A stretch of 63,864 nt of DNA, filler included, from Ministeria vibrans ATCC 50519 (Eukaryota; Protista; Filasterea), in the NCBI GenBank assembly GCA_943704425.1. It is 9 parts of 9 records of this genome, joined end to end, with 100 filler letters (N's around TTAATTAATTAA, not from the genome) between each part and the next. Parts side by side here need not be neighbours in the genome. Positions count along the whole stretch, not along the records: positions 55,209 to 58,432 come from CALSCP010001987.1; 8 more parts are not named here. The stretch is one strand, 5' to 3'. This document shows, piece by piece, positions 54,996-58,432 of this stretch. The notes under the pieces are model-generated. The model saw nothing but the letters and a program-made list of their open reading frames with translations. It had not been told where the DNA came from and did no database searches. Both the position numbers and the translations under genes were made by a program. Position 1 is the first letter of the stretch, and the number at the start of each line of letters is the position of its first letter.

Positions 54996-55213
54996 GTCAG
55001 TTGTTGTCGTTGTTCTTTCTCGTTTTTCTTAGTTGTTGTTCACACTAATATCATCATCGCATTGTTGTTGTCGTTGTTCTTTCTCGTTTTTCTTAGTTGT
55101 TGTTCACGNNNNNNNNNNNNNNNNNNNNNNNNNNNNNNNNNNNNNNNNNNNNTTAATTAATTAANNNNNNNNNNNNNNNNNNNNNNNNNNNNNNNNNNNN
55201 NNNNNNNNTATGT

Positions 55214-58200
55214 TTAGGGACATGTCCCCCACTTGGGAAGATTTGAAGCCTTAAAGCCTTCGGCAAAATATTTTGGGCCGTATTTAATTCGAGGAACGCA
55301 CCATTCACTGAGACTAAGAAATGACGAGAAGAAAATGAGTAGAGAAGGTATCGACTTTTAGTGTCGAACTCTTGTTTGAAGGATGATGCTCCATCGAACA
55401 TGTAAGACATATCAGTGACACTCTACAGAATGGAGTAAGTGAGATGTGTGACGTATTCAGAGTGCCACTCACTGAAGTGTCAAACGTCAGTGGTTGATTG
55501 AAAAATGTTGCTCCACGGAACATGGAATACATAGAAGTGACACTCTACGGAATGGAGTAAGTGAGATGTGTGACGTATTCAGAGTGCCACTCACTGAAGT
55601 GTCAAATGTCAGTGGTTGATTGAAGGATGATGCTCCACGGAACATGTGAGACATAGAAGTGACACTCTACGGAATGGAGTAAGTGAGATGTGTGACGTTT
55701 TCAGAGTGCCACTCACTGAAGTGTCAAACGTCAGTGGTTGATTGAAGGATGATGCTCCATCGAACATGTGAGACATATCAGTGACACTCTACGGAATGGA
55801 GTAAGTGAGATGTGTGACGTATTCAGAGTGCCACTCACTGAAGTGTCAAACGTCAGTGGTTGATTGAAGGATGATGCTACACTGAACATCCAAGACATAT
55901 CAGTGACACTCTACGGAATGGAGTAAGTGAGATGTGTGACGTTTTCAGAGTGCCACTCACTGAAGTGTCAAACGTCAGTGGTTGATTGAAGGATGATGCT
56001 CCACTGAACATGCCAGACATAGAAGTTACACTCTACGGAATGGAGTAAGTGAGATGTGTGACGTATTCAGAGTGCCACTCACTGAAGTGTCAAACGTCAG
56101 TGATTGATTGAAGAATGATGCTCCACTGAACATGTGAGACATATCAGTGACACTCTACGGAATGGAGTAAGTGAGATGTGTGACGTTTTCAGAGTGCCAC
56201 TCACTGAAGTGTCAAACGTCAGTGGTTGATTGAAGGATGATGCTCCACGGAACATGTGAGACATAGAAGTGACACTCTACGGAATGGAGTAAGTGAGATG
56301 TGTGACGTATTCAGAGTGCCACTCACTGAAGTGTCAAATGTCAGTGGTTGATTGAAGGATGATGCTCCACTGAACATGGAAGACATAGAAGTGACACTCT
56401 ACGGAATGGAGTAAGTGAGATGTGTGACGTTTTCAGAGTGCCACTCACTGAAGTGTCAAACGTCAGTGGTTGATTGAAGGATGATGCTCCACTGAACATG
56501 GAAGACATAGAAGTGACACTCTACGGAATGGAGTAAGTGAGATGTGTGACGTTTTCAGAGTGCCACTCACTGAAGTGTCAAACGTCAGTGGTTGATTGAA
56601 GGATGATGCTCCACTGAACATGGAAGACATAGAAGTGACACTCTACGGAATGGAGTAAGTGAGATGTGTGACGTATTCAGAGTGCCACTCACTGAAGTGT
56701 CAAACGTCAATGGTTGATTGAAGGATGATGCTCCACTGAACATCCAAGACATAGAAGTGACACTCTACGGAATGGAGTAAGTGAGATGTGTGACGTATTC
56801 AGAGTGCCACTCACTGAAGTGTCAAATGTCAGTGGTTGATTGAAGGATGATGCTCCACTGAACATGGAAGACATAGAAGTGACACTCTACGGAATGGAGT
56901 AAGTGAGATGTGTGACGTATTCAGAGTGCCACTCACTGAAGTGTCAAACGTTAGTGGTTGATTCAAGGATGATGCTCCATCGAACATGGAATACATATAA
57001 GTGACACTCTACGGAATGGAGTAAGTGAGATGTGTGACGTAGTCAGAGTGCCACTCACTGAAGTGTCAAACGTCAGTGGTTGATTGAAGGATGATGCTCC
57101 ATCGAACATGGAATACATATAGGTGACACGCTACGGAATGGAGTAAGTGAGATGTGTGACGTATTCAGAGTGCCACTCACTGAAGTGTCAAACGTCAGTG
57201 GTTGATTGAAGGATGATGCTACACTGAACATCCAAGACATATCAGTGACACTCTACGGAATGGAGTAAGTGAGATGTGTGACGTTTTCAGAGTGCCACTC
57301 ACTGAAGTGTCAAACGTCAGTGGTTGATTGAAGGATGATGCTCCACGGAACATGTGAGACATAGAAGTGACACTCTACGGAATGGAGTAAGTGAGATGTG
57401 TGACGTATTCAGAGTGCCACTCACTGAAGTGTCAAACGTCAGTGGTTGATTGAAGGATGATGCTCCATAGAACATGGAAGACATAGAAGTGACACTCTAC
57501 GGAATGGAGTAAGTGAGATGTGTGACGTTTTCAGAGTGCCACTCACTGAAGTGTCAAACGTCAGTGGTTGATTGAAGGATGATGCTCTACTGAACATGTG
57601 AGACATAGAAGTGACACTCTACGGAATGGAGTAAGTGAGATGTGTCACAAATTTAGAGTGCCACTCACTGAAGTGTCAAACGTCAGTGGTTGATTGAAGG
57701 ATGATGCTCCATCGAACATGGAATACATATAAATGACACTCTACGGAATGGAGTAAATGAGATGTGTGACGTATTCAGAGTGCCACTCACTGAAGTGTCA
57801 AGCGCCAGTGGTTGATCGAAGGATGATGCTCTACTGAACATGTGAGACATATCAGTGACAGTCTACGGAATGGAGTAAGTGAGATGTGTGACGTTTTCAG
57901 AGTGCCACTCACTGAAGTGTCAAACGTCAGTGGTTGATTGAAGGATGATGCTCCATCGAACATGGAATACATATAAGTGACACTCTACGGAATGGAGTAA
58001 GTGAGATGTGTGACGTATTCAGAGTGCCACTCACTGAAGTGTCAAATGTCAGTGGTTGATTGAAGGATGATGCTCCATCGAACATCCAAGACATAGAAGT
58101 GACACTCTACGGAATGGAGTAAGTGAGATGTGTGACGTATTCAGAGTGCCACTCACTGAAGTATCAAACGTCAGTGGTTGATTGAAGGATGATGCTCCAC

Positions 58201-58432
58201 GGAACATGCGAGACATAGAAGTGACACTCTACGGAATGGAGTAAGTGAGATGTGTGACGTATTCAGAGTGCCACTCACTGAAGTGTCAAGCGCCAGTGGT
58301 TGATTCAAGGATGATGCTCCACTGAACATGGAAGACATAGAAGTGACACTCTACGGAATGGAGTAAGTGAGATGTGTGACGTTTTCAAAGTGCCACTCAC
58401 TGAAGTGTCAAATGTCAGTGGTTGATTGAAGG
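55214..58432 (-). CDS. DUF285/BspA-type repeat protein encoded one repeat per exon (at least 26 repeat exons plus a C-terminal cap exon); 5'-truncated
   Basis: 72-nt exons read SVTxMxxMFxxASSFNQPLTFDTS, separated by 50-nt GTGAGT...GTAG introns. The last repeat exon splices over a 56-nt GTTCGA...TTAG intron (55314-55369) to give FKQDLSEWCVPRIKYGPKYFAEGFKASNLPKWGTCP*. No stops or indels in any exon. Confidence 0.88.
55370..58432. repeat. 122-bp tandem array (~25 units) made of exon plus intron
   Basis: Intron 3' ends (plus-strand CTAC) recur at 55423 + 122k, for k = 0-24, through 58351 with no length variation. Confidence 0.97.

Follow-up and report, generated by a model that had tools for sequence, protein, structure and literature searches.

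Nearly identical exon-intron units with five hypervariable codons in a DUF285/PARCEL repeat gene of Ministeria vibrans

Architecture of the repeat array

The window analysed, a stretch of 63,864 nt assembled from nine joined parts of the M. vibrans ATCC 50519 genome (GCA_943704425.1), carries a tandem repeat array on the minus strand of the part derived from CALSCP010001987.1 (Table 1). TRF reported it as a single array (55372-58432) with a period of 122, 25.1 copies, 94% matches and 0% indels, and the splice-site anchors occurred 25 times each with a spacing of exactly 122 bp. In each unit, read on the minus strand, 50 nt of intron (GTGAGT...CGTAG) preceded 72 nt of exon, whose 24 codons in phase 0 encode the repeat SVTxMxxMFxxASSFNQPLTFDTS, in which V2, M5, M8, F9, A12, Q17, D22 and T23 were invariant among the repeat exons. 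The units were 94.2% identical among themselves (mean of pairs), while the mean pairwise identity of the repeats at the protein level was 84.5% (24 x 24 residues), with 94% in the framework and 48% at the hypervariable positions. The initial annotation had recognised 25 repeat exons alternating with nearly invariant introns; the register and the exon-intron anatomy were confirmed by TRF, anchors and translation, and the 72-nt exon holds for units 1-24, while exon 25 proved to be shorter, ending at 55370 according to the RNA contigs.

Table 1. Coordinates of the array and its flanking exons along the window.
Feature	Coordinates	Strand	Remarks
3' part of upstream repeat exon (FNQPLTFDTS), truncated by the edge of the piece	58401..58432	-	array goes on past 58432
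Array, 25 units x 122 bp	55351..58400	-	TRF and splice anchors; all introns GT-AG, phase 0
Units, k = 0..24	intron donor G 58400-122k, last base 58351-122k; exon 58350-122k to 58279-122k	-	
Repeat exon 1, S-SS-SG (positions 4, 6, 7, 10, 11)	58279..58350	-	plus L15, A20-L21
Repeat exon 4, cassette Y-YS-DG	57913..57984	-	again in exons 6 (57669-57740), 11 (57059-57130) and 12 (56937-57008); private singletons in each
Repeat exon 9, cassette S-SH-RG	57303..57374	-	again in exons 18 (56205-56276) and 23 (55595-55666)
Hypervariable block, example of exon 9	57342..57365	-	codons 4-11, 24 nt
Repeat exon 10, cassette D-SW-SV	57181..57252	-	again in exon 21 (55839-55910)
Exons 13-17 with introns	56327..56886	-	4 of 5 exons S-SS-SG (commonest cassette); exon 14 S-SW-SG
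Intron 25	55423..55472	-	depth contrast between run types
Repeat exon 25 (last), 53 nt	55370..55422	-	SVTDMSYMFDGASSFKQ plus 2 nt of a split codon; cassette D-SY-DG
Terminal intron, 56 nt	55314..55369	-	GT-AG
Final coding exon	55217..55313	-	first base finishes split codon GA|T (D), then LSEWCVPRIKYGPKYFAEGFKASNLPKWGTCP
Stop codon TAA	55214..55216	-	3' UTR extends beyond the piece

The order and number of the units were taken from one assembly, and the array might partly be a construct of it, with real unit types placed in an arbitrary order and number as a collapsed repeat was traversed. The piece is a contig of 3.2 kb ending inside the array, neighbouring units were no more alike than distant ones and no higher-order repeat structure was found among the 25 units; in public k-mer contigs the array was fragmented to pieces of 50-110 nt, and the summed intron depth was about 130 times (run X1) and 18 times (run X4) that of the unique flank, values which hint at more than 25 units but do not represent a copy number. 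The five hypervariable codons of every exon, however, are confined to 24 nt (exon start minus 9 to minus 32), which is below any read or usual k-mer length, so that a single read or k-mer spans each combination, which precludes chimerism within an exon. The recurring cassettes, moreover, differ by private singletons, and the 122-bp register is exact all along the array. We regard an artificial order or number of units as unlikely, albeit with a sizeable chance of being true.

Splicing and expression

Depth and junctions were examined over 55209-55544 in four sequencing runs, two of DNA (X1 and X4) and two of probable RNA (X3 and X17), the latter assignment being a guess backed by the missing intron depth. 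Both probable RNA runs had zero depth at 55425-55472, inside intron 25, while the DNA runs were deep there and kept the introns. The loose ends at 55422 and 55473 in the probable RNA runs ran straight into adjacent exon ends and starts, and record 13 of X17 matched exon 25 exactly and continued into an upstream exon end. A joint 55313>55370, skipping 56 nt (CT..AC on the plus strand), was seen in both probable RNA runs and in neither of the DNA runs. Exons were thus joined at the splice sites predicted, in agreement with the exon-intron reading of the initial annotation, and what the piece holds is the 3' end of an expressed, spliced nuclear gene, whose 5' part with the N-terminus lies outside it. 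All exons are symmetric in phase 0, and exon skipping could therefore add isoform diversity.

A period indivisible by three (122 bp) and the lack of a long ORF would also suit a non-coding satellite with periodic variation mimicking codons. Against this stand the intronless, exon-joined probable RNA, the matches of the tested exons to DUF285 with thousands of protein relatives, and the reading frame past the terminal intron, which reaches a stop after restoring in LSEWCVPRIKYGPKYFAEGFKASNLPKWGTCP, together with two Cys, the canonical family motif F-x-Q-D-L-S-x-W; the probability left to a satellite is practically nil. The intron with its exon edges folded no better than shuffles (z = -1.25) and an Rfam search of the sequence gave no family; no structured-RNA role is claimed.

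Family membership and predicted fold

Four single exons matched PF03382 (DUF285) on their own with E-values from 8e-5 to 6.5e-4 (exon 1, 6.5e-4; exon 4, 3.8e-4; exon 9, 8.4e-5) and 20-23 bits, the latter being below the whole-protein cut-off of 25 bits because only one repeat was scored. A phmmer search with a 59-aa translation from the window recovered 9814 multi-repeat relatives (best E = 1e-73, with 31 matched stretches), among them P0106 and P0104, which scored 208 and 316 bits, respectively, against PF03382 and both matched TIGR02167 ('PARCEL repeat'). Neither a 55-aa read-through ORF nor P0104 led to any contigs in exact look-ups, exact patterns of the intron core and exon core had no matches in metagenome contigs, and a homologous-protein search with the 59-aa translation returned no candidate within a length window that excludes long relatives.

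The family (PF03382, TIGR02167; 'BspA family LRR surface proteins'; PMC2996958) forms many-unit tandem arrays and has in common with the Ministeria repeat the motif V, M, MF, A, F-N-Q, (W/F)-D-x-S, including variable hydrophilic residues between the conserved ones at the same five positions. Other family members had identities of 0.76-0.96 at the framework, but of 0.11-0.48 at these positions. As judged from these alignments, positions 4, 6, 7, 10 and 11 correspond to the generic variable positions of DUF285/PARCEL repeats, so that their hypervariability is a trait already described for the family (PARCEL, Röske 2010). The exon-exon junction D-T-S|S-V-T is flanked by a dyad with 7-nt arms, GACACTT/AAGTGTC, which pair in the predicted fold and match the palindrome of a Mycoplasma consensus (PMC2996958, Table 1).

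The array also departs from the described family: the canonical period is 25 residues against 24 here, and nearly every domain is unique in PARCEL arrays (PMC2996958), whereas the present units are nearly identical in DNA. In the array, furthermore, every repeat is a separate exon, and homogenisation extends to introns and exons alike; introns are mentioned nowhere in PMC2996958 (0 occurrences). A bacterial array of the DUF285 family had a pS of 0.24 among its repeats against 0.06 in the array, indicating that this homogeneity is not a general property of the family. PARCEL repeats occur in marine microalgae (PMC2996958), and in ocean diatoms DUF285 was reported to be the one domain whose function is unknown within the 100 Pfam families of highest transcription (bioRxiv 10.1101/2024.06.08.598090).

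The fold was approached through P0106, which has 17 of 19 framework residues in common with the array repeat. Its model reached a pLDDT of 98 in the repeats and aligned with LRR structures in VIA-align at Z-scores of 20.4 (RPP1 LRR) and 19.1, while Foldseek against the PDB returned weak LRR rows (E at least 4e-3) and a PDB sequence search with the exon profile gave chance matches only. DSSP assigned to the model single-residue bridges only, at repeat positions 4 and 19. In an in-register sequence alignment with a plant LRR kinase, V2, M5 and M8 fell on core leucines. The array-encoded protein is accordingly predicted, by way of this homologue, to be an LRR-type solenoid with one turn per exon, and we infer that the five variable positions would form its surface recognition face. 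Variable residues between the core positions are likewise found in the xxLxLxx segments of LRR receptors (plant NLR/RLP, lamprey VLR), but canonical LRRs have LxL where DUF285 has the M-F pair and the local geometry differs.

Diversity and selection at the five codons

Re-reading of the exons reproduced the residue sets proposed by the initial annotation, namely S/D/Y (TCT/GAT/TAT) at position 4, S/Y at position 6, H/S/W/G/Y/R at position 7, R/D/S/Y at position 10 and G/V/R at position 11, as well as the 15 distinct combinations among the 25 exons, the DSWSV cassette at 55839 and 57181 and the fourfold YYSDG. The alphabet is fixed in the sense that each residue has one codon per position. The five codons (15 nt) accounted for 58% of all diversity: the per-site diversity was 0.272 in the hypervariable nucleotides compared to 0.034 in the rest of the exon and 0.021 in the introns, and non-singleton variable sites occurred at 10 of these 15 positions and at 6 of the other 107 (Fisher P = 1.4e-7). 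Most introns had been said to differ at a single A/T site, and indeed 12 were identical and 8 more differed only at intron nt 18.

The excess was nonsynonymous. The pN of the five codons was 0.35, while pS at the other codons was 0.062 and the introns diverged by 0.021; pN exceeds the neutral proxies 6- to 16-fold, whereby the 50-nt introns may be constrained and inflate the upper ratio, the ratio to synonymous sites being 5.6. All alleles could be explained by 15 minimal mutational steps, every one of them nonsynonymous; most neighbouring alleles were 1 nucleotide apart, differences of 2-3 nt per codon also occurred, and synonymous variants were absent from the five codons. These comparisons support the proposal of diversifying selection, according to which selection would favour diversity at codons 4, 6, 7, 10 and 11.

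The five positions might, on the other hand, simply be unconstrained and neutral, with purifying selection acting elsewhere. Purifying selection is indeed seen at the framework codons (pN/pS 0.41), the five positions are variable throughout the family, and their neutrality has been left open in the family at large (PMC2996958). However, neutral sites interspersed in a homogenised segment of 24 nt should have become as uniform as the introns and synonymous sites; those observed exceed them in diversity, with differences of 2-3 nt per codon and no synonymous variants, and we consider neutrality very unlikely. The variation extended over every codon position and every base, instead of adenines alone, and DGR-like mutagenesis was rejected on this ground.

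Proposed reassortment among units

The initial annotation proposed that the five codons reassort combinatorially, on the basis of all four pairings at positions 4/7 and 4/10, and every example was found where it had been placed. Four-gamete incompatibility extended to 55 of 120 informative site pairs, with at least 5 recombination events (Rm), so that the failures are real, but the reassortment was far from free: the 15 haplotypes compare with 20.9 expected under independent shuffling (P = 5e-5), linkage was significant for position pairs 4-6, 4-10 and 6-10, and a PHI-type test gave P = 0.036 at the narrowest window and no significance at wider ones (up to 0.18). Combinatorial reassortment is therefore partly supported. 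Short-tract conversion, which had also been invoked, is unneeded, since a tract end falling between codons suffices.

With a PHI result this marginal, parallel mutation within a limited, selected set of residues has to be weighed: whole-unit duplication and selection would act without any exchange between units, and the mosaics would arise by recurrent point mutation. The short mutational paths between alleles, as well as the strong linkage of positions 4, 6 and 10, agree with such a course. The presumably neutral intron A/T site, in contrast, was four-gamete incompatible with 10 other sites, which without exchange demands repeated A<->T hits at this one site of an intron in which 42 of 50 sites never vary; near-identical introns over 25 units, moreover, need ongoing homogenisation or a very recent amplification. 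Parallel mutation as the sole source of the mosaics appears rather unlikely.

Comparison with known repeat systems

In Slit one LRR is encoded per 72-bp exon and in ribonuclease inhibitor one repeat pair per exon, both with old repeats and long diverged introns. Exon and repeat boundaries coincide in symmetric phase in these genes as in the array, whose introns, in contrast, are 50 nt long and nearly identical; symmetric phase makes in-frame duplication or skipping of exons possible. Plant LRR repeats are not known to be homogenised at the DNA level, and the diversity of lamprey VLRs is somatic, the expressed gene being assembled from donor cassettes; nothing in the sequencing runs examined pointed to such assembly in the array. 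TALEs are intronless bacterial effectors with helical repeats of 33-35 residues, each recognising one DNA base through the RVD at positions 12/13. Their pattern of near-identical tandem repeats with few hypervariable residues for specificity is similar to that of the array, whose repeat is, however, of 24 residues and of the DUF285 type, with a homologue modelled as an LRR-type solenoid. What is unusual in the array is the combination of one exon per repeat with near-identity of everything outside five codons.

TALE and VLR, both invoked by the initial annotation, are fair analogies, while the closest precedent is provided by the HIC WD40/ANK/TPR repeats of fungal NLRs, such as het-d, het-e and the nwd family (Paoletti 2007, PMC1805685; Dyrka 2014, PMC4986451). 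Those repeats have about 85% mutual identity and undergo concerted evolution, while diversifying selection acts on three to five codons in each repeat and cassettes are reshuffled; the array would resemble them in these respects, its mean of 84.5% lying just under the 85% or more that defines HIC repeats over a length of 100 residues or more. By analogy, its pattern agrees with concerted evolution accompanied by positive selection, as in these repeats. In fungal NLRs the repeats follow an N-terminal NACHT/NB-ARC domain and vary in number among strains; for the Ministeria gene the piece begins downstream of the 5' part, and other sequencing runs were covered as k-mer contigs. It differs from them in the predicted LRR-type solenoid, in belonging to another lineage and in the introns within the homogenised unit; LRR was not found among fungal NLRs (Dyrka 2014, PMC4986451).

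Proposed mechanism and implications

Taken as a whole, the locus is probably a spliced DUF285/PARCEL solenoid gene in which the units are homogenised and five codons are kept diverse by selection. The 122-bp exon plus intron would be the unit of both duplication and homogenisation, the latter proceeding by unequal exchange and/or gene conversion in register and holding the introns and framework codons at about 98% identity; 20 of the 25 introns indeed fall in two classes one base apart. Selection favouring diversity would retain nonsynonymous variants, and spread them, at the five positions that vary throughout the family. Over successive turns these positions are predicted to line up as a single stripe of the solenoid, which probably serves as a ligand-recognition face. 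Cassettes would be copied whole with their units, in keeping with the shortage of haplotypes and the private singletons of recurring cassettes, while occasional exchange or parallel mutation might produce the mosaics. Such thorough mixing fits the lack of an adjacency effect, but so does a mis-ordered assembly.

More speculatively, the gene, perhaps as part of a family with more than 100 units per genome, might represent a recognition repertoire evolving like the fungal NLR repeats, a suggestion to which we attach a low probability. Shuffling and homogenisation would then act on the exon plus intron modules, and five surface residues in each LRR-like turn would diversify, with targets that may include, for example, viruses, bacteria or mating partners.

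Against a near-frozen framework the five selected positions stand out and mark the probable functional face, and the array offers a natural library of about 15 cassettes for testing. Homogenised repeats with hypervariable codons are known from fungal NLRs and TALEs; the Ministeria array would add a third setting, an LRR-type fold with introns in the unit.

Array structure and splicing

The piece 55209-58432 is dominated by a tandem array with a period of 122 bp (25.1 copies, 94% matches, indels 0), in which the donor-like GTGAGTGGCAC and the acceptor-like CCATTCCGTAG each occur 25 times on the minus strand at a spacing of exactly 122 bp, every unit reading on that strand as a GT-AG intron of 50 nt followed by an exon of 72 nt. 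The exon holds 24 codons in phase 0, translated as SVTxMxxMFxxASSFNQPLTFDTS. Because the period is not divisible by three, the array has no long ORF, and read-through ORFs end after about 55 codons.

Contigs of four public runs, two of DNA (X1, X4) and two guessed by the tool to be RNA (X3 from organism B, X17 from organism A), were aligned to 55209-55544, a stretch running from the unique tail through exon 25 and intron 25 to exon 24. The sequence also occurs in algae and in marine plankton metagenomes, so it comes from a marine alga. The depth at 55425-55472 was zero in X3 and X17 and maximal in X1 and X4. RNA-run contigs stopping at 55422 went on with the plus-strand image of the last bases of an upstream exon, and those stopping at 55473 with the image of the first 18 bases of an exon; in these continuations, exons are joined to exons exactly where the GT and AG had been predicted. 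Record 13 of X17 was an exact match to exon 25 over its first 41 nt, the unique TAC codon among them, before passing into the end of an upstream exon. The direct joint 55313>55370, skipping 56 nt (GT..AG, minus strand), was shared by the two RNA runs and missing from the two DNA runs; therefore, exon 25 ends at 55370 and the next exon starts at 55313. The array is a real, spliced gene. With the codon GA/T, split across the terminal intron, the frame regains F-K-Q-D-L-S-E-W, which is how the family motif reads in its canonical form. The tail after this intron has 32 non-repeat residues with two cysteines (…EWCVP…WGTCP) before the stop and might cap the solenoid at its C-terminus.

Features at the exon junctions and the 3' end of the gene
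Feature	Position	Strand	Remark
Junction arms, example	57303-57310 with 57368-57374	minus	GACACTT / AAGTGTC
Terminal intron, 56 nt	55314-55369	minus	joint in X3 and X17; absent from the initial annotation
Final coding exon	55217-55313	minus	reads LSEWCVPRIKYGPKYFAEGFKASNLPKWGTCP; frame after terminal intron
Stop codon	55214-55216	minus	directly after final coding exon

At all exon-exon junctions, the end of one exon and the start of the next are reverse complements, and the spliced junction re-forms the palindrome that has been published for PARCEL genes of Mycoplasma, with the intron at most 1 nt from the palindrome axis. Predicted pairing of the junction arms was no better than that of shuffles (z = -1.25).

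Hypervariable codons

Reading exon by exon reproduced the residue and codon sets initially listed for positions 4, 6, 7, 10 and 11, the 15 combinations among 25 exons and the recurring cassettes (residue sets at the five positions), and the four-gamete examples were found in place. The introns were indeed nearly invariant, 20 of the 25 falling into two classes split by intron nt 18 alone (12 identical, 8 others with A for T). Over 24 full units, the diversity per site was 0.272 at the 15 hypervariable nt, 0.034 at other exon nt and 0.021 in the introns, with 58% of the diversity concentrated in 12% of the sites; non-singleton variable sites made up 10/15 in the hypervariable codons vs 6/107 elsewhere (Fisher P = 1.4e-7). 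By Nei-Gojobori proportions, pN was 0.35 at the five codons, while the other 19 codons had pS 0.062 and pN 0.026, and intron p was 0.021, placing the five codons 6- to 16-fold above neutral sites. Because neutral sites lying between homogenised ones should share their uniformity, this excess argues for selection favouring differences between turns at the five codons, as proposed initially. The alleles are linked by at least 15 mutational steps, every one nonsynonymous, and each hypervariable position uses a single codon per residue.

Probable homogenisation and possible exchange between units

The pS among repeats was 0.06 in the array vs 0.24 in a bacterial array from the same family, which leaves the former much more uniform at neutral sites. 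Its exact register and its two intron classes suggest that the whole 122-bp module is still being homogenised or was amplified very recently. In the four-gamete test, 55 of 120 site pairs were incompatible (Rm at least 5), which suggests exchange between units; the intron A/T site was incompatible with ten others. A PHI-type test gave a marginal signal (P = 0.036) that was confined to the narrowest window. The combinatorial reassortment claimed by the initial annotation is backed by the incompatibilities but not by the haplotypes, 15 observed vs 20.9 under free reassortment (P = 5e-5), nor by the significant linkage of positions 4-6, 4-10 and 6-10. Its observations held item by item, and its interpretation stood in part. 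The recombination signal is limited, and the picture is of whole cassettes copied with occasional mosaics, rather than free combinatorics.

Five changes cluster within 9 nt of intron 7 (57619-57668; …CTAAATTTGTGAC…), and the exons of units 1 and 5 (58279-58350, 57791-57862) have another small cassette in common, A20-L21 (GCG CTT) in place of T-F; both resemble small patches of imported sequence. The intron nt 18 classes strictly alternate in units 18-24 (55545-56326; T A T A T A T) and once more across the four units 8-11, a pattern that may reflect a 244-bp dimer as the duplicating unit. A lag-2 signal was absent from whole-unit differences, and the array had no higher-order period.

In the assembled order, neighbouring units were as dissimilar as distant ones; the lack of an adjacency effect and of a higher-order period fits a well-mixed array but also a mis-ordered assembly. 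Chimerism cannot have produced the combinations within an exon, as the five codons together span just 24 nt. Summed contig depth of the intron (55425-55472) relative to the unique flank (55209-55352) was about 130-fold in X1 and 18-fold in X4, which is not a copy number. The genome may hold many more units than the 25 assembled, in the same gene or in paralogues. Longer contigs of RNA and DNA runs (610-1894 nt; records 11, 18, 25, 26) carry about 50 nt of repeat and then unrelated sequence, with loose ends at 55388 and 55423-55430; they are probably other, less repetitive genes or transcripts with the same repeat type from the same organisms.

Family membership and predicted fold

Four single-exon translations each matched Pfam DUF285 (PF03382; E 8e-5 to 6.5e-4). 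A 59-aa translation (one exon plus read-through) had 9814 matches among 1.84 billion representatives, the top ones being long proteins with 20-40 matched stretches each. The Prymnesium parvum protein P0104, named 'BspA family leucine-rich repeat surface protein', as well as the relative P0106, scored 316 and 208 bits with PF03382 and also matched TIGR02167, 'PARCEL repeat-containing surface protein'. By membership, the array product is a DUF285/PARCEL protein. In the 45 listed relatives with the most conserved framework, repeats of one protein were 76-96% identical at the 19 framework positions and 11-48% at the other five (one outlier, 88%); therefore, the hypervariable positions of the array are the generic variable positions of the family, for which hydrophilic residues that vary strongly between conserved hydrophobic ones have been described (Röske et al., 2010, PMC2996958).

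The framework nearest to the 24-residue 'FDTS' subtype of the array (18/19 positions) was found in P0079, P0153, P0154 and P0106, proteins of assemblies of uncultured marine prokaryotes (in some cases labelled Nanoarchaeota MAG), which would agree with the reported horizontal transfer history of the family. P0084, a 1557-aa DUF285 protein from a bacterial metagenome contig (L001:3001-7674), has 19 perfect 25-residue repeats whose same five positions draw on a similar alphabet, S/Y/D/G/H/W/R. Its gene is followed immediately downstream by one for a transposase (rve); a nearby transposase is noted for some taxa in the PARCEL paper (PMC2996958).

A sequence search of the PDB returned no DUF285 structure. 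The homologue P0106 was folded (repeat NVTSMxxMFxxAxSFNQPLNFDTS, 17/19 framework residues common to the array repeat), giving a mean pLDDT of 88, and 96-98 across the repeats. VIA-align matched the model to LRR structures, namely that of RPP1 (Z 20.4) and a BspA-type one from Bacteroides (Z 19.1), and Foldseek gave only weak LRR rows. A phmmer alignment placed the repeats in register on the ectodomain of a plant LRR kinase (E = 7e-5), V2, M5 and M8 falling on core leucines. At repeat positions 4 and 19, DSSP assigned bridges of a single residue. The five positions would form one exposed stripe, given that equal positions stack in a solenoid and that these are hydrophilic, and by analogy with LRRs.

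Precedents and putative function

The closest precedent by mode of evolution would come from fungal NLRs, whose highly internally conserved WD, ANK and TPR repeats are about 85% identical (84.5% in the array), evolve in concert and are under diversifying selection on three to five codons per repeat at the binding surface (PMC1805685, PMC4986451). TALE RVDs and the variable residues of LRR/VLR proteins are looser analogies for the five residues. New relative to the literature searched are a homogenised module of an exon plus its own intron, with one repeat per exon, and such a mode in an LRR-type fold in an alga; introns are unmentioned in the PARCEL paper (PMC2996958), and DUF285 was not found paired with this structure in that literature. 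A preprint (bioRxiv 10.1101/2024.06.08.598090) lists DUF285 as one of the top 100 transcript families in diatoms, with enrichment at high latitudes, and likens its solenoid shape to antifreeze proteins; ice binding is a low-probability alternative for the array product, whose putative function is most likely that of a recognition or adhesion surface.
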